From Selaginella moellendorffii (taxonomy: Eukaryota > Plantae > Lycopodiophyta): a stretch of 64,000 nucleotides of DNA. The DNA lies in the NCBI RefSeq assembly GCF_000143415.4, contig NW_003314263.1, forward strand, positions 3,916,451-3,980,450. The letters are read 5' to 3'. Positions 50,658 through 59,567 of this stretch are shown piece by piece. The notes beneath the pieces were generated by a model. That model was given only the letters and a program-made list of their open reading frames with translations. It searched no databases and was not told the origin of the DNA. Made by a program: the position numbers and the translations under genes. Numbering within the stretch: the stretch's first letter is position 1; each line of letters starts with the position of its first letter.

Positions 50658-53600
50658 TTACAGAGGAAACTCCGCTTGCAATGTTTCCAAGTCACGCTTG
50701 TCACAGGCGTCGAGAAGATCTGTCCTGGTGGCACTGGCACAACAACGAAGGTCGACACCAATCGCGTGAGATCAAAGCGCTGCAAACCCGAGGATAGAAT
50801 AGACACGAACCTGAGTGACATTCTAAGGTACTGCCAAGCGTTGTCGGCTTTGGGATTCATGCACAAGGCTCGGACGTAGTAGCGAATGGATTCCTGGTAC
50901 TGGGCCTGCACAAGATTTGTCTCTTTATCTATCATCTAGAAAAGAAGATAAAAAGTTACTTGATTCGCGTAGCCAATTCCCATGTTAGACCACGCGCGCA
51001 CATAGTTTGGCTTTAGATTTAGCGCCTGGAAAATTTCCAATGAGTTAGAAAAGAATGCACAAGCAGCAGAGAGAAACTATCACCTCTTGGTAGGCATATA
51101 TCGCGTCGGAGCTTCGTGCGCTGTTGGCCTGCGTAGCTCCCAGCTTGTTCCACAGGGAATAATCACGGGGTTTTAGCTTGAGAGCTGTCTCGAAGGACTG
51201 TATCGCGTTGGAGTATTCCCGAGAGAGGTTGTAGAGAACACCCAAGACGGTGTGGACGTCACCATCTTCTGGTGCCATTGCTGCTGCCTCGTTAAACAAT
51301 CGGGCAACCTGAAGGATTTCAAAGAGTTTGGGGTTACAGTTCAATTGCAAAAACTTACGTCCGATTGCGTGAGACTTTCGGCATTCTCTTGAGGCACAAG
51401 TATTCCATACTTTGGATGGTGTTGAAGCCAGCCTCTTAGATATCTCAAGGCTTCAGGCTGCTCCAATTCTAAAAGAAAATCAACACTATAAGAACGAGGG
51501 CAGCTGAGGTTACGTTACCATTAGTATGACTAACGCCAAGAGCTAACAAAACCTCCAGATTGGTGGGGTCTGCGTCTCTTGCTCGAACCATCGATGCGAT
51601 TGCCTAGCAAAGAGAAATAGAGGTTCACAACAAAATTAAAAGGAAATAAAAATAAAAGACTCACCTGACGATCGTCATCATTTTCAGCATGAGTAATCCC
51701 TAGCAATCGCCATCCCTCGGCATTCTCTGGATTTTTTATCACTTCCGCTTCCAGAGCAAGCACAGCTTCGCTGAGCAGGCCCTTCCTGAACAGCTCTTGG
51801 CCTTCCTTGAGGGGATTCGGGTGGCCGACATATGGGTTCTGGTCAGCAAAAACGTATGTCCACTTTGAGGACGCGGAACGACTTTGTTCCCCTCTAAGTT
51901 GTTCCTCCACGAACCTGGAAAACAGCGTTAGCTCTACAAAAAGGACGACATTTAGCCTTACTTATCGTAACTTTCTTGCCAGTCCTCTGACACGAACGCA
52001 CCATCATCCACCTGCTCTTGAAACTCGTCGGCCCACTTTTGCGTCCTGTTGGAAAATTCTTCGGCCCAGGCCCCACCAGGTTCTTGTTGAGCAAACTCGT
52101 CAGCCCAGCTGTTTGCGTTGGCGTGCTACATTTTCTACGATCAGCCTCTCGAAAACAAAACGTATAAAGAAAAAATAAAACCTCGCCAGCAGTGAACTCT
52201 GCAGCCCAGTTTCCCGGATGGTTTACTTGTGTGAACTCTTGAGCCCAGGCATTGGGAACAGCGTTCTCCTTCACTTGATTGTCTTCTACAATCAATTCAC
52301 CGCGACTCATTCGCGACACAAAGTGCAAAAACTTTGAATTCTGTAAGACATGATTTTCAGTGCCAGAAAGATGCAAGAATAAAAGCTTACTTGGAACTTT
52401 GGATCTTCATTTTTAGACAGCGTGTCCACAAGAGACTGAGTTTGTTCTAAAGAGCTGACGTTTCTGAAATCAGCGTGCCTAGCAGGCAGAGACTGCTGCT
52501 GCTGAAAATTCGAAGAACAAATGTTACAAAACAAAAACAAAAAAACATCGAGAGAAAGATACCACCTCACTGAACTGCGCCGCCCAGCCGTCAGCATCAT
52601 GTTGTGATTGAAACTCTTCAGCCCAGTAATTCTTCTGAGGATATTGTTGATGGAAATCTTGCACCCATTCCTCATGTTTACCATGGTTGGTGTTGCCCCA
52701 ATAATTTTCCATCTCAGAAAACGCTCTATTGGAAGGTTCTCGAACTTCTCGAACGCCATCTTCTATATCCAAAGATTCCAAGAAAGCATTAACCTGAAAA
52801 TAAATATTAGAACTATGAGCTATGAGAGCAAAGAATTCAGAGCTTATATGTACCTGCGCATTGACATACTCTTCCCCTTTATCGGCAAAGAAATGCCTAG
52901 CCATGATACTACTACGATCGCGAATGCGTTGCTTGTCGAATCCTGACAATCCGAGCTCAGGCAGGCGAACAGCATGAAAAGGAAGTTCTGTTCTGCTGCT
53001 AGCGAAAAATGAACGAAGGAAACCAGATAGAGCATGCTGCGGAGGTCCTGTGATTTACAAGCACAAATTAAAACAAAGCTCGCAAAAGAAAAAAAAACGC
53101 GAACCTTACCATCCATGTAATGTAGCTGCTGAACGTTTCCTCCCGGTTTCTGGCCATAGATTCGTTCGAATTCTGAAAACCTCGACAAGTCTTCTCCCCT
53201 TTGCGTAGCTTCGTTCCAAGCATCAGCGTAAGGAGCCGGTTCGGCATCACGAAACCCGCGCATGAACTCTGAATGCTGCAACTGAAAACTCAGCAAAGCT
53301 CCAGATTGAAAATTTTCCACCTGAGTTTCATTCTGAAACTCCGTTCCCGGAAGTGATGCAGCGGAGCTGCTCCCATACTCCAATTGCTGTCCAGGGCCTT
53401 GGAAAGTTGGAATGGTTGGAAGCTCACGTACTCTTTCCTGAAAAGAAAGGCTTTTAGAGGACAGCACTCCAACTAAACATACAAGAATGTGGCCTATTTC
53501 CTCTCTCGATTCTCTTCTTTCTTCCTAAACTTTGCTCTAGCATTAGAAGTGAATATCGATTCTACGAACCTGAGCTTTTGGCAGCGATCCCAGCAAGGAG

Positions 53601-53695
53601 CTGGCGAAATTGGCCAGAGGATTCGAAGAGGACGAGGCGCCCTCGCCTGGGACGACGCATCCTCCAGCTCCAGTCACCAAATCGCGCAGCGCCAT
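50658..53695 (-). CDS. PEX5: Peroxisomal PTS1 receptor PEX5
   Basis: MALRDLVTGAGGC...SNPL, WxxxF repeats, NSKFLHFVSRMSRGEL, TPR region LWNKLGATQANS, ending EFPL*. Confidence 0.96.
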
Positions 53696-53906
53696 CGCTC
53701 CCACCCCAGCGCCCTATCAATCTATGATAGAACCCTAAAAAAAAATTTCACCTCTATCAAATAATTGACCCTAGGCCTAGGTTCATGGAAGGAAGCTTCA
53801 TGGAGAAATCTGGATCTCACGAAATTTTCTCTCTCTGTAGCCTTGACTTCCACAGAGGAGGCAAGAAATCCCTAGTTTCACGACATTGGCGCTGGGACTG
53901 GCGGGC

Positions 53907-56032
53907 ATGGAGGAAGAATCCATCATCCACGCTCTCCTCGCGACGATCGATCATATTTCCGAGGTAGCCATGGCGGCACAGGTAAACAAGGGCCAGATCT
54001 TCGTCCTCCTCACGGCTTGCGGCTACGTGCGCCTCCACATTGATCTCTGGAGCGCGCGCTGCTCGCCGGCCACCATCGCCAGGCAGCAATCGTGCTTCCA
54101 GCAGCTCGATCAGGCGCTCCTCGCGGTGCTGCGCGTGGCATCCAAGTATTCCGGGCCGGATTGGATCGAGAAGCCATGGCTGTACGTGGCTCGCGAGAAT
54201 GCGGTGGTTTTCGAGGCGCTGCTCGACGATCTGGCGATCCATGTGGACCTCGTCATGGCGGCATTGCTCCAGGACAGGGATTGTTCTTCCGGGACCAAGG
54301 ATTGGATTGGGGTGTTGAGAAGGACGAGCTGGGAGAATTCCAAGGCGCTGAGGTGTGGGCTGAGGATCAGTGCTAGCGAGGACAAGACCAAACTGCTAGA
54401 GATTTTGGGAAGTGCTCGGGGTGGCTCCTCAGTGGCCACCAACATGCTGCGATCGTCGGGCTCGCCATCGGCGGCAAGTAGAATGGATTGGATTGATCCA
54501 TCAGAGCTCGAGCTTGACGATAGGAAGCCTCTGGGACAAGGCTCGTTTGGATTAGTGTTCCAGACAACTTGGGCTGGTCACACAGTGGCAGTGAAGAAGT
54601 TTCCAAAGGAGCTATGGTCGCAAGATCCGTGGGAGGTATGCCAATCTTTCCATTCTTTGACTTATAGCTGGTGATGGTTTTTTGTTCCCTTGTTTCTTTT
54701 CAGGGAGAGATCATGGTGAAGCTCAGGCCGTGCCATCCATCGGTGCTCCAAATCCTCGGCTGGTCGGAGAAAGATAACAAAGCTTATCTCGTCATGGAGC
54801 TCATGCAAGGAAGCCTCGCTCGGCTCATTCCAAGCCTCGTCACTGCTCCAATCATCCTGATCGTGGAGATCATGCTCCAGATCGCACAGGGAATGGATTT
54901 CGTGCACAAGAAGAAGATAATTCACAGGGATCTCAAGCCGGGGAACGTCCTCGTAAACTTTGACGGCAAGTTTGAGGATGGATCGGCTCACAACATCGTC
55001 GCAAAGGTGGCGGATTTTGGGCTCTCCAAGATGAACTTTTCAAGCAACCATTATCACAGCCACTTGAAAGGAACGGTTCTCTACATGGCTCCAGAGATGC
55101 TCGAGGGGGACTGGGAGATGAAGAGCCAGTACGATTTAAGCGTCGACGTTTACAGCTACGGGATGATGTTTGCCGAGATCCTCACCGGGACGCCGCCATA
55201 TCCTCTCGGCCTTACCAAGAAGGCTTTGCTCGATGAGATTCGGCGTGGCTTGAGACCCAGGCTTCCGCAACGCTGCCCTCAAGCTCTCAAGGACACCATC
55301 GCCTACTGCTGGGATTCACAGCCTCGTCGGCGGCCAACTTTCGAGCATATATGCACGCGGCTGTGGAGGCTCAAGGGACAGCTTCTCACCGGGGGTGTCT
55401 ACTGCATGCCGGACGCGAGGATCATTGTCAAGGGAAAGCTTCTCGTCGGGGAAAAACTCACGGGACAGGGGAGCTTTGTGACTGACACCGAGTGGTCGAT
55501 TTGCTACTGGGTTCGTCACCAGAGCAATGGCAAGACAGTGCGGCTGTTGCCAGCGATGGAGATAAGCTCTCGAGACAAATCTCCAGAGTACGTGATCACG
55601 GGTTGCGACTACGACTCCAGCATCGAGCTGGTTTGCATCAGCGTGGACAGCAAAGAGCACAGCACCACCACGACTTGCAGGGCGTTTGCTGGCTACGGTG
55701 GATCTGTCGACTGTGACGATTTCTACAAGCAGCCGAGTACACACTTCGCGGTGAAAGTTTTCGAAGATGATGAGAAGTCCTGGAAGGGAAAGTTAGTGAT
55801 CACAAAGACCGGATTGAAGCTGAGCAACCGCAGGATGTGCAGTTCTACCATCTGGGAGCCCTACAATGGAGGTTTTTCCGTGGAAGTGGCACCACTGGAG
55901 AGCAGCCTGGCGCAGTGTGTAGTGAAAGGCGAGGGTGGCACATATCGTCTACAGTTTGATAAGTGGGAGTTGCGAGACCTGGCGATCATCACTATCAAGA
56001 GCAGCATCTATGGTGGCAAGACGAATAAATAG
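53907..56032 (+). CDS. Raf-like/TKL protein kinase with a helical N-terminal domain and a C-terminal Ig+PH-like extension
   Basis: Two exons (intron ~54636-54703). LGQGSFG, VAVKK, HRDLKPGN, VADFG, YMAPE and DVYSYG are all intact. Confidence 0.92.
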
Positions 56033-56453
56033 CGATGAAAGCGAAAGTTTATCACAGTTTGGTTAGAGATGAGGAGCAGGATATCTGGCGGCTCACCCAA
56101 ACCTTGAAAGAAAAAATCTTGTAAGAACTTGGCAGCAAGAGAAATCTCAGGTAAAGGAGGGGCAAGGAATTTTTCTGTCTAGATTTCATCTTTTTGAGCA
56201 GATTTAAATCAAATCTTGCACAGCCTTTTTTTTTTTTTTTGAGAGAGAGTTGTAGCTCAATTGTTTTCTTGTTATCCAGCAATCAGTCCAGAATCGAGGT
56301 TTGTGCTCACGCCGAAGAGCGAACCAACTGTGCAGCTCAATTGGAACTCCTTTGCGAGACGATTGAGCTTCCACGGCCCATTCTAACACCATCCGTGAAA
56401 ACGAATCCCTTTTTGCTGCCTAGTTGGTTTTCGAAGACTATGAACCCTTATAG

Positions 56454-56589: not shown

Positions 56590-57043
56590 GCCTCTGTGAG
56601 TGGATCATGACTCTCAGAGCTTGTCCTCTTGCTCTTGCTCCAATGAAATGCCCTCCGTCTATCCCCTCGACATGACCCAGCTCTCGTAAGAATCAAGCTC
56701 CTTTTTCTTCCTTCTTCGCAAGAAATTTCTCTTCGTTTTGTGCTGTGGCAGGAAGATGACTGGAGTAGAGTACGTGCTGCTCGAAGCCAGGAGCCCAATC
56801 TCTTTGTCCTCCACAAGTAAAAGACTATATCCTCGACGGCCATATCTATCAATTACCGCTGCTCTACAGTGTTGTTTGCAGCAGATGGTTAAATCACGAG
56901 GCCTTTCTTGTGCTGCTTCTGATGATCCGCCAGCTGTGCATCACATCTCCACTGCCTTCTGCCAAGTCTCAGCAAAGCTCGAGAAGTCTTTTGTTCCTGT
57001 CCCTGACGATGCTCTGATGTAGACCATGAGAATGAGCTGTGCA

Positions 57044-57616
57044 ATGAAGATCTTCATTCCCCTCGTTCTAACACTGGTTTTTGCAATTGCTCCTGCACAA
57101 TCGAGCCTCCCAAATGCGGGAGAATTGGATCTATCAAAGTGCACCGAGGTGATCCGGTTCTACTTGCAAGACCAGTTCAATGGGAGCAATCCGACAACAG
57201 CAATTGTCCTGCCTCCTCGTAACAACGAAACGTTGTTTGGTCAGGTTGCCATTTTTTATGACAAGCTGACTACGGAGTCCTCGATCAACTCCAAGCTTGT
57301 GGGAAGAGCCAAGGGTTTTCTGGTGATAGATTCGCTGGGCAAAAGCAGCTTTCTCCAGATCATGATGGAGCTGGAAGGGCGGAAAGGTACAATAGTGCTC
57401 CATGGTCAGAACCCCTTCACTGAGTCCCAAAGGGAAATAGCCGTTGTTGGGGGCACAGGAGAGTTCAGAAACGTTCAGGGCTACGCATTAACGAGCACAA
57501 CTGGAGCTGAACCTGGTGGGCTTATTGCAATCTACGAAGTTCATCTGGTGAGGCTCTGGAAATGCATCTGGAAATGCTTCAACATGAAACTCATATTTTA
57601 CTATTTCATTTTGTAA
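57044..57616 (+). CDS. Dirigent protein (copy 1)
   Basis: IRFYLQD, FGQVAIFYDKLT, VGRAKG, REIAVVGGTGEFRNVQGYA. C-terminus extended by indels. Confidence 0.9.
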   Translation: MKIFIPLVLTLVFAIAPAQSSLPNAGELDLSKCTEVIRFYLQDQFNGSNPTTAIVLPPRNNETLFGQVAIFYDKLTTESSINSKLVGRAKGFLVIDSLGKSSFLQIMMELEGRKGTIVLHGQNPFTESQREIAVVGGTGEFRNVQGYALTSTTGAEPGGLIAIYEVHLVRLWKCIWKCFNMKLIFYYFIL

Positions 57617-57806
57617 ACTCAGAACCCTAGACCATTAAAAAATGAATATGCTTTATTTAATTATACATCTTAACCTATTACCCACACTCTCAGTCACTCA
57701 AAATTTCTGAGACCTGATCCGCGCAATTAAAATCACTCGGCGAGTGCACCAGGAGGGCCACTACCGCTAATCTGTTCATAACATGACTTAATTCATTAGA
57801 AACTAC

Positions 57807-58776
57807 CTGAAGATCCTTGGTTGCCGGTTCTACTAGATCCCTGATTTGTTCGTTGTAAATCTGCATTGATATTGCACTTCCTGCCGGCTGGAGGTGCGTT
57901 GTTTCTGTGGAAGTACGTCAATTTTAATTGCTACAAGTAGTTATGGTCGACAGTCTTTACTTGTTCAATCCGCAGGAAGAGCGCCTTGAAGAATCTGGGT
58001 GCAATCCCAGCCTCATCACTCAGGGAACCTGATTTAGGAATGCTTCCCCACATTGTGTAAGTTTTCCCGCTTCCCGTCTGCAAGAGATGAAAATGCTCAT
58101 ATTTTATGATCCAGGTTGCGAGTCTGAAATACCTGACCGAAGGCGAACATAGAGCAATTAAAGCCATCCAGACAGTGCGCCACCATAGGCGAGCCTACCA
58201 CGAAAACATGTTGCTATAGAGCCATGGTTCATACAATTCGCTAAATGTGCTTGCTTGCCTGTGTTGAGTTTTCCCCAGCAACTCCATCGCACGTGAATTG
58301 CTGATGCTCCAGCGTAACAGAATTTGAGGATACTACAAACAAGCTTCTGGCTGCTGCTTCTTCCTGCTCTTTGCTGATCAATGGCCTTACTCTCAGGACA
58401 ACCTAAAGAAAAAAGATAGAATAACATCAACAGAAAAACAGAGAACACAACCTTACCTTCACTCCTGTGTCTGTCTCAAGCGGCAGACGGTCCCAATCGA
58501 GCTTGCACCTGAGATGACGATCTTGACCTTCCTGCACCTCATTCAACCTACATTTTGCCAAAGGCACCCGCATAGGGCTGCAACACTTGCTGCTACTGCA
58601 CCTGGACAAGGAAGAAGAAGAGGAACAAGAAAAAGAAGCCGAGGGAGGCATATTTTCATCATTCTGTTGCCTCCAGTTCTTGAGCCTGTGCTCTCATCCC
58701 GCTCGCTTCGATCAAAGCTCCAGTGAAATCCTCCTGCTGCTGCGTTGGAAGCAATCTTGGAGCCGAAGCTTGACAT
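57807..58776 (-). pseudogene. Truncated kinesin-12-like motor gene
   Basis: Spliced pieces DTGVK|VVLRVRPL, CLDGFNCSMFAFGQ|TGSGKTYTMWG, GIAPRFF..LF, IYNEQIRDL. No continuation of the motor domain is visible. Confidence 0.75.
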
Positions 58777-59030: not shown

Positions 59031-59567
59031 ATGAAGATCTTCATTTCACTCGTTCTAGCTCTGGTTTTTGCAATCGCTCCTGCAGAATCGAGCTTCCCAA
59101 AGCCGGGAAGATTGGATCTATCAAAGTGCACCGAGGTGATCCGGTTCTACTTGCACGACCAGTTCACCGGGAGCAATCCGACGTCAGCAGTTGTCCTGCC
59201 TCCTCTCAACAACAAAACATTGTTTGGTCAGGTTGGGATCCTAGATGACAAGCTGACTAAAGAGTCCCCGATCAACTCCAAGCTTGTGGGAAGAGCCAAG
59301 GGTTTTCTGGTGTTAGATTCACTGAGCAGCAGCAGCTTTCTCCAGAGCATGACGGTGGAGCTGGAAGGGCGGAAAGGTACAATAGTGTTCCATGGTCAGA
59401 ACCCGTTCACTGAGCCTCAAAGGGAAATCGCTATTGTTGGGGGCACAGGAGAGTTCAGGAACGTTCAGGGCTACGCATTAACAAGCACAATTGGATCTGA
59501 ACCTGGTGGGAACATTGCAGTCTACGAAGCTCATCTGCTGAGGCTCTGGGAATGCTTCAAGCCATGA
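59031..59567 (+). CDS. Dirigent protein (copy 2)
   Basis: IRFYLHD, FGQVGILDDKLT, REIAIVGGTGEF; signal peptide. Confidence 0.92.
   Translation: MKIFISLVLALVFAIAPAESSFPKPGRLDLSKCTEVIRFYLHDQFTGSNPTSAVVLPPLNNKTLFGQVGILDDKLTKESPINSKLVGRAKGFLVLDSLSSSSFLQSMTVELEGRKGTIVFHGQNPFTEPQREIAIVGGTGEFRNVQGYALTSTIGSEPGGNIAVYEAHLLRLWECFKP

Follow-up and report, generated by a model that had tools for sequence, protein, structure and literature searches.

We analysed a 64,000-nt window of the Selaginella moellendorffii genome (RefSeq contig NW_003314263.1) and describe here a gene on its plus strand whose product appears to join an MLKL-type helical bundle, a protein kinase and an Ig-PH tail in one chain. As read from the list of open reading frames (ORFs) and the sequence itself, this is a two-exon gene that fills the span 53907-56032 exactly, opening with its ATG and closing with the stop codon TAG (56030-56032). 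Two long ORFs on this strand abut at 54636-54703, a 68-nt interval that begins with GT, carries a pyrimidine-rich tract and ends in AG, and this intron interrupts the N-lobe of the kinase. Exon 1 (coding part 53907-54635) translates to 243 residues and exon 2 (54704-56032) to 442 residues and a stop, and both translations equal the annotated 685-residue protein P0001, called 'probable serine/threonine-protein kinase DDB_G0268876 [Selaginella moellendorffii]' by NCBI. P0001 is colinear with both exons, residues 1-243 being 100% identical to exon 1 by tblastn, and the gene was placed on scaffold GL377567.1 of assembly GCA_000143415.2. Kinase and tail are encoded in one uninterrupted exon (exon 2), and every peptide string quoted in the first-pass annotation, which a model had made from the letters of this DNA, is found in the two exon translations.

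We used Logan contigs from four runs belonging to four studies, placed on 53700-56300, as evidence for the transcript. Contigs of all four runs omit exactly the 68-nt GT..AG interval and therefore represent spliced RNA; the kinase gene is expressed in all four unrelated studies. One contig of 2,335 nt (X1) spans 53801-54633 and 54702-56202 with 0 differences from the genome. Because this match runs from 53801 to 56202, the transcript includes the tail, whereas the first-pass annotation had allowed that transcripts might end before it. Contigs X5, which starts at 53769, and X12, which reaches 56221, extend the minimum mRNA to 53769-56221, made up of a 5′ untranslated region (UTR), the two exons and a 3′ UTR that ends before a run of T. 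Spliced RNA contigs covering the whole gene led us to reject a gene-fusion artefact.

A second allele is present in three of the four runs, and the differences between the alleles are spread unevenly along the protein. Over the kinase (residues 233-472) there is 1 nonsynonymous difference against 7 synonymous ones, while the N-terminal 206 residues carry 5 nonsynonymous and 2 synonymous differences, as does the tail. These small counts fit a constrained kinase flanked by faster-evolving domains. At 55763-55875, two allelic contigs occur in three of the four RNA data sets with 5 differences in 113 nt, three of which alter residues of the PH domain (K611Q, L614V and S624C).

The kinase is the only domain that Pfam recognises in P0001 (Pkinase, E 2.5e-42; PK_Tyr_Ser-Thr, 1.7e-40). 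Its start, residues 206-243 at 54522-54635, holds the glycine loop G210-G215 and VAVK230 and is matched by Pkinase on exon 1 at residues 206-235; the remainder, residues 244-464, lies at 54704-55366 in exon 2. The motifs G210QGSFG, VAVK230, HRDLKPGN317-324, DFG347-349, APE372-374, DVYSYG391-396 and RPTF453-456 are all present, in agreement with the first-pass annotation, which had described a kinase with all catalytic motifs, and since they are kept, we predict from sequence that the enzyme is active. P0001 thus differs from the pseudokinases AtMLKL1-3, as GxGxxG, VAVK230, HRDLKPGN, DFG347 and APE372 are all retained. The 60 best-matching kinases of solved structure are all of the Src family or B-Raf, with no plant receptor-like kinase (RLK)/Pelle member among the 60, which suggests that the kinase is tyrosine kinase-like (TKL-like) rather than of the plant RLK/Pelle type.

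N-terminal to the kinase, an AlphaFold2 (AF2) model resting on a six-sequence paralog alignment (A1) gave a mean predicted local distance difference test score (pLDDT) of 74 and a predicted template-modelling score of 0.70. It places helices at residues 6-22, 28-51, 54-80 and 95-121, followed by two more, one long (128-169) and one short (175-183). We read residues 1-125 (53907-54281) as a four-helix bundle of MLKL_N type, residues 128-183 (54288-54455) as brace helices and residues 184-205 (54456-54521) as a Ser/Gly-rich linker of low model confidence (pLDDT <50 at residues 185-205). Structural comparison with VIA matched the model to the human MLKL N-terminal domain (6zvo_A, Z 14.5, root-mean-square deviation (rmsd) 2.8, 143 of 145 residues; 2msv, Z 14.0), and an exhaustive VIA comparison with 48,161 PDB representatives again put human MLKL first (6ux8_A, Z 14.2, rmsd 2.7, 149 of 152 residues), ahead of mouse MLKL (11.8), AtMLKL3 (11.3) and the CC-R domain of NRG1.1 (8.2). 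Only 11 of the 48,161 chains reached Z>=8. The brace helices superimpose on the MLKL brace (model range 3-167 against 6zvo, 2msv and 6ux8) and on AtMLKL3 residues 1-348. Foldseek gave nothing for this model at E<=1e-3, AtMLKL3 appearing at E 0.037 with a template-modelling (TM) score of 0.55, and ESM-Atlas features gave weak leads only (0.75-0.81), all of them within the MLKL_N/RPW8/DUF7792/MCAfunc group.

Another way to approach the N-terminus is through its relatives. Shuffle tests linked the N-termini of the paralogs to one another, P0001 scoring 11.9 bits against P0095, and P0095 scoring 14.4 bits against P0014 and 14.5 bits against P0090, each with 0 of 3000 shuffles. The A1 profile matches the N-termini of many kinase relatives, including P0028 (E 7e-16), P0063 and P0051, and these three exceed the MLKL_N gathering score of 27 (P0063 with 32.0, P0051 with 33.6 and P0028 with 30.9 bits), four more proteins lying below the threshold. 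When A1 was aligned by hhalign with an alignment of the MLKL_N-positive moss proteins (A3), the two matched at 98.1% probability (E 1.1e-13) over 155 columns. Pfam searches with the N-termini of the six paralogs themselves matched DUF7792 in three (best E 0.0057) and MLKL_N in one (E 0.091). We conclude that residues 1-183 form a divergent MLKL_N-type four-helix bundle with a brace. The HeLo/MLKL-like half of the first-pass description of the N-terminus therefore stands, on VIA Z scores of 14.0-14.5 to human MLKL and the hhalign match, while its DUF1221-like half does not: neither P0001 nor any member of the family matches DUF1221, and we rejected that type in favour of MLKL_N/DUF7792.

The tail was modelled by AF2 on a five-sequence alignment (A2), with a mediocre overall pLDDT of 56. 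We assign a putative Ig-like beta-sandwich of A9/SCAB-Ig type to residues 474-557 (55394-55645) on the modelled strands, the match to paralog P0014 and the Atlas features and shape; a poorly modelled inter-domain segment to residues 558-586 (55646-55732; pLDDT <50 at model residues 94-122); and a PH-like domain of seven strands and a C-terminal helix to residues 587-685 (55733-56029). In this second half the strands lie at model residues 124-197 and the helix at 200-219, with pLDDT 63-79, after a disordered stretch. Searched against PDB with Foldseek, the tail found the SCAB1 Ig-PH crystal structure first (4dix_A, E 1.7e-4, 226 columns); there were 11 matches at E<=1e-3, and nearly all the others listed contain PH or PH-like (FERM F3) domains. 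VIA also placed 4dix_A at the top (Z 12.6, rmsd 2.5, 107 residues, model residues 60-219), with 8y47_A at Z 12.3. It returned 721 chains at Z>=8, of which the best 50 are PH-fold chains with Z 11.2-12.6 and, one FERM row apart, rmsd 1.9-3.1 Å. The whole-chain rmsd to SCAB1 is 13.5, so that the relative orientation of the two domains differs or is uncertain.

Two further lines bear on the kinship of the tail. An ESM-Atlas shape search put a streptophyte cluster with IG_AIR9 (86%) and DUF7046 (79%) first (TM 0.53), the match covering 153 residues across both domains (model residues 21-221), and Atlas features ranked IG_AIR9, SCAB-Ig/SCAB-PH and PDE12-like_N clusters on top (0.92). At the sequence level the tail aligns over its full length with the C-termini of P0014/P0151 and P0090/P0153, with shuffle-test scores of 24.2 bits for P0014 and 11.3 bits for P0090 against shuffled maxima of 10.1 and 5.3 (0 of 3000 shuffles). 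The signal of this homology lies mostly in the first half, the Ig segments of P0001 and P0014 alone scoring 21.5 bits (0 of 3000 shuffles). P0014 and P0151 in turn match Pfam IG_AIR9 at 19.3 bits, below the cut-off of 27.5, with E 1e-3 for the whole protein and 1e-4 for the tail alone. The first-pass annotation had proposed Ig and PH domains of AIR9/SCAB type, and its two halves fared differently. A PH-like fold for residues 587-685 is well supported, while an Ig-like domain at 474-557, and with it a specific kinship with the SCAB/AIR9 Ig-PH tandem, is moderately supported by several independent, individually modest lines. The beta1-beta2 loop of the PH domain is acidic (EDDEKS), and canonical phosphoinositide binding is not evident from its sequence. 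An Ig profile found no second Ig-like copy in P0001, which also has no leucine-rich repeats (LRRs) or other Pfam domain; orthology with AIR9 was rejected, there being neither LRRs nor an A9 repeat array.

To place P0001 in a family we searched for its relatives. A full-length HMMER search gave a best 150 matches dominated by multi-kinase proteins, and a domain-profile re-search was then used. A local re-search identified P0090/P0153, P0014/P0151 and P0095 as the S. moellendorffii paralogs with alignable non-kinase parts, their architectures being those of automatic gene models. P0090 has the same domain order as P0001. The model of P0014 runs from a bundle and an active kinase to a second bundle (485-584), a pseudokinase (653-889, without HRD or DFG), Ig and PH. 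P0095 (XP_024543707, on another scaffold) carries an EDC4_C-like domain after the kinase (PF21289, 27.9 bits, cut-off 27) instead of Ig-PH, which suggests that C-terminal domains have been swapped within the family. The Ig-PH tail is kept at full length in three Selaginella paralog pairs, and profiles of its Ig half and PH half match only Selaginella proteins among 158 sequences. P0014/P0151 (XP_024525978 and XP_024543886) lie on other S. moellendorffii scaffolds, and the gene model of P0014 pairs a kinase with an MLKL-like pseudokinase in a single chain.

The nearest relatives found outside Selaginella are moss proteins, mostly with MLKL_N and two kinase domains, among them KAG0615011 and KAG0555603 of Ceratodon purpureus and CAK9191814 of Sphagnum. 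In a FastTree analysis of 202 kinase domains, 28 of 29 bundle-linked domains fell into one group of 47 rows (support 92), and the bundle label required 12 changes on the tree compared with a mean of 27.4 when shuffled. P0001 grouped with the first kinase of P0014 and with P0095 (support 92); this is a quick tree, and its support is not strong. The bundle and kinase together are a unit of a moss and spikemoss family with shuffled domains, within which the Ig-PH tail is seen only in the Selaginella paralogs. No orthologue of the full architecture was found outside S. moellendorffii by word-index search, among the best 150 HMMER matches or in a metagenome scan, though other lycophytes may have relatives with the tail that escaped these searches. 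Queried with the tail, its alignment or the N-terminus, the word-index protein search, which is blind to relatives at ~20% identity, returned P0001 itself or nothing, and the metagenome scan with the tail alignment gave no relative. Of the relatives, P0063, P0087, P0051, P0124, P0044, P0028 and P0096 have an MLKL_N bundle and two kinase domains, some with two bundle-kinase units. The moss proteins with MLKL_N and two kinases resemble cereal tandem-kinase immune proteins in layout, and we found no paper on them.

Proteins that join such a bundle to a kinase fold are known from animals and flowering plants. The plant MLKLs were defined from 48 seed-plant genomes as proteins in which a HeLo domain is followed by a brace of five helices, a pseudokinase and a tail that is serine-rich and unstructured; the HeLo domain of AtMLKL is buried by brace and pseudokinase, and AtMLKL1 associates with microtubules (10.1101/681015). 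Wheat Pm13, called a kinase fusion protein, combines an MLKL_NTD with a kinase that has all key residues, and the MLKL_NTD-kinase cluster was set apart from a DUF1221-kinase cluster (PMC10951266). In R3AK the four-helix bundle (4HB) executes cell death, perturbation of the kinase active site makes the protein auto-active, and the protein oligomerises (10.64898/2026.08.07.743466). The statement in the first-pass annotation that angiosperm MLKLs are pseudokinases thus holds for AtMLKL1-3 (10.1101/681015) and not for Pm13, whose kinase keeps its key residues (PMC10951266), or for the 4HB and kinase domain of R3AK. Since Pm13 and R3AK already have a bundle and an active kinase, that combination is a known one; what is new here is the Ig-PH tail and the lycophyte and bryophyte setting.

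Like Pm13 and R3AK, P0001 has a four-helix bundle of MLKL type, followed by a brace and a kinase domain, and in P0001 bundle, brace and intact kinase stand in one chain. Those two proteins, however, end after the kinase where P0001 adds an Ig-PH tail of ~210 residues; the Pm13 kinase belongs to RLK/Pelle LRR_8B while that of P0001 has its nearest solved counterparts in Src and B-Raf; and they come from grasses, whereas P0001 comes from a lycophyte and has no nucleotide-binding leucine-rich repeat receptor (NLR) partner within 10 kb. With AtMLKL1-3 (PDB 6KA4) it has in common the bundle, a multi-helix brace and the kinase fold (AtMLKL3 aligning over 185 residues, Z 11.3), and the microtubule association of AtMLKL1 is a loose parallel to the cytoskeleton-family tail; the AtMLKLs, in contrast, combine a pseudokinase, a DUF1221-type bundle and an unstructured serine-rich C-terminus, where P0001 has intact motifs, no DUF1221 and a folded Ig-PH C-terminus. 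Vertebrate MLKL (6ZVO, 2MSV, 6UX8 and 4BTF) gives the best structural match of residues 4-167 (Z 14.0-14.5, rmsd 2.6-2.8 Å), the model covering 143-149 of the 145-154 residues of the executioner domain with its brace helix, yet at ~10-12% identity. It is moreover a pseudokinase activated in trans by RIPK3 and has no Ig-PH tail, whereas the kinase of P0001 could act in cis. The moss MLKL_N tandem-kinase proteins have a homologous bundle (hhalign 98.1%) and kinases in the same part of the tree, but where P0001 has its Ig-PH tail they carry a second kinase, and none of them is matched by the profiles of the Ig and PH halves.

The counterparts of the tail are found in proteins of another kind. SCAB1 (4DIX, 8Y47; PF16709/PF17684), the top Foldseek and VIA match, has the same Ig-then-PH order but no detectable sequence similarity, and it has an N-terminal actin-binding domain and coiled coils, without kinase or bundle. 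Reviews assign it one actin-binding domain, separate from the C-terminal PH domain, which binds inositol phosphates weakly (PMC3426786). The A9 domains of AIR9 and the plant proteins with IG_AIR9 and DUF7046 (PF23197, PF23080) are the other counterpart, the latter giving the top ESM-Atlas shape match over both tail domains. AIR9 itself has LRRs, an array of eleven A9 repeats and a microtubule-binding region at its N-terminus, where P0001 has a single Ig-like domain and no LRR. It is a basic, serine-rich N-terminal stretch of AIR9 that binds microtubules, and the A9 domains are thought to interact with proteins or ligands (PMC3488599). An Ig-PH like that of SCAB1 is also on record for Toxoplasma IMC32 (PMC10569561). 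We found no paper joining AIR9/SCAB domains or such an Ig-PH module to a kinase, and none mentioning DUF7046, IG_AIR9, DUF7792 or PF22215 by name.

Taken together, the results show an expressed gene for a 685-residue cytosolic protein of four modules, namely an MLKL_N-type bundle with its brace, a TKL-like kinase predicted to be competent, and Ig-like and PH-like domains in a SCAB1/AIR9-type tandem, and we think it probable that an autoinhibited core is released by phosphorylation and that the tail has a targeting or regulatory role. By analogy with vertebrate MLKL, the AtMLKLs and R3AK, the bundle would be held inactive against the brace and kinase until kinase-dependent phosphorylation released it, possibly by autophosphorylation, as the kinase looks active. 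Once free, the bundle would oligomerise and act at a membrane, and the outcome would be ion flux, cell death or a defence response that is not lethal. For the Ig-PH tail the most likely function is targeting or regulation through the binding of a lipid, an inositol phosphate or a partner protein. The matching MLKL structures include 6d74, whose title names direct activation of the executioner domain by inositol phosphates, and this makes a link between a PH module in cis and inositol-phosphate activation of the bundle an attractive, if speculative, idea. Any immune or cytoskeleton-guarding function is one that we infer, and for a guarding of the cytoskeleton, which the first-pass annotation had raised as a possibility, we found no evidence, with no NLR within 10 kb. 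The known cytoskeleton-binding parts of AIR9 and SCAB1 lie outside their Ig and PH domains, so the relatives of the tail give no argument for direct binding, and the tail is less likely to be a direct cytoskeleton binder.

A number of observations weigh against this four-module reading. Both AF2 models rest on alignments of only 5-6 paralog sequences, and outside its kinase P0001 has no Pfam match: residues 1-205 match no family even at E<=10, and PDB sequence and profile searches with the N-terminus gave noise only, with no sequence match to any solved structure. Because helical bundles reach Z ~13-14 fairly easily, the HIP1R THATCH core scoring 12.5 against our model, the modelled fold match of the bundle is suggestive on its own, not conclusive; the sequence and profile link to MLKL_N proteins is the stronger evidence. 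The tail might be a generic beta-sandwich followed by a generic PH domain, with no specific link to the A9 domain of AIR9 or the Ig-PH of SCAB1. Residues 465-685 have no Pfam match even at E<=10, with IG_AIR9, SCAB-Ig and SCAB-PH included, PDB sequence and profile searches gave nothing, the Z of 12.6 to SCAB1 is tied with those of ASAP1, neurofibromin and many other PH domains, and the Ig half, with seven predicted strands at residues 482-556, was modelled at low confidence (pLDDT 46-64). We nevertheless consider a generic tail unlikely, since the SCAB1 Ig-PH comes first in both Foldseek and VIA, with a Foldseek alignment that spans both domains; the independent Atlas shape search puts the plant IG_AIR9 and DUF7046 cluster first over residues 21-221; the best language-model feature matches lead to IG_AIR9 or SCAB clusters; and the homologous Ig segment of P0014 matches IG_AIR9 at E 1e-4.

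A different objection concerns function. P0001 could be an ordinary signalling kinase of development, the membrane or the cytoskeleton, with the bundle as a regulatory, dimerisation or membrane-docking element, the Ig-PH tail localising the enzyme to its substrates, and no part in execution or immunity. Many plant proteins outside immunity contain MLKL_N-like bundles (the MCAfunc, PUB10_N and CNR13-like Atlas clusters), no NLR or other immune gene lies within 10 kb of the kinase gene, and SCAB1 and AIR9 are themselves cytoskeleton regulators (PMC3426786, PMC3488599); an intact kinase that is conserved between alleles, and expression in all four unrelated studies, would suit such an enzyme as well. 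However, every one of the closest characterised proteins that combine the bundle with a kinase or pseudokinase (MLKL, the AtMLKLs, Pm13 and R3AK) works in cell death or immunity, the family includes tandem kinase-pseudokinase forms and swapped C-terminal domains of the sort typical of kinase-fusion immune proteins, and nonsynonymous differences between the alleles are more frequent in the N-terminus and the tail than in the kinase, albeit in small numbers. An ordinary signalling role is accordingly doubtful in our estimation, though it is the strongest of the alternatives. It is by comparison highly improbable that the gene is an error of annotation or assembly, or a functionless chimera of this lineage in decay: the failure of the above searches to find an orthologue of the full architecture outside S. 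moellendorffii speaks for it, but kinase and tail share one uninterrupted exon, a full-length spliced transcript equals the genome perfectly, the gene is expressed in four studies, the allele differences in the kinase are almost all synonymous, and the tail is retained at full length in three paralog pairs.

The four-module reading can be carried further than we would ourselves defend with much confidence. P0001 could be a single-chain necroptosis-like device of an early vascular plant, in which the active kinase licenses its own bundle and the Ig-PH tail is a built-in sensor, either for a lipid or an inositol phosphate or, as an integrated decoy, for a pathogen effector that targets AIR9/SCAB-family proteins. 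We give this version a low probability; if it were true, the moss tandem-kinase relatives would, along with P0001, mean that MLKL-type kinase-fusion immunity predates seed plants.

AtMLKLs restrict biotrophic pathogens, and in wheat a bundle and a kinase domain make up the resistance or cell-death proteins Pm13 and R3AK. To our knowledge, all functional work on plant MLKL-type proteins has so far been done in angiosperms. The present analysis indicates that there is a moss and spikemoss family in which MLKL_N-type bundles are linked to TKL-like kinases predicted to be catalytically intact, often in tandem kinase-pseudokinase forms, and that in Selaginella this family gained a folded Ig-PH module otherwise known from cytoskeleton-associated proteins. 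P0001 would thus offer a natural test case for the control of a bundle by a kinase in cis and for what an added PH-type module contributes, be it targeting, lipid licensing or a decoy. As the protein is small and the gene has one intron and is clearly expressed, it should be easy to clone and assay.

Upstream, a gene for a 742-residue TPR-repeat protein (50658-53695, minus strand) has its start about 200 bp from the start codon of the kinase gene, and one divergent promoter region may serve both genes. On the downstream side there are two dirigent-domain genes on the plus strand (57026-57616 and 59031-59567), and between them, on the minus strand at 57733-58651, is a 175-residue gene model that matches kinesin motor and Microtub_bd and is probably a kinesin fragment. 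The ORF list also contains a possible upstream ORF of 60 residues at 53785-53967 on the plus strand, with ATGs at 53785 and 53800 in one frame; it runs across the main start codon (53907) in a different frame. Because RNA contig X5 starts at 53769, this upstream ORF may lie inside the 5′ UTR, where it may damp translation of the kinase.

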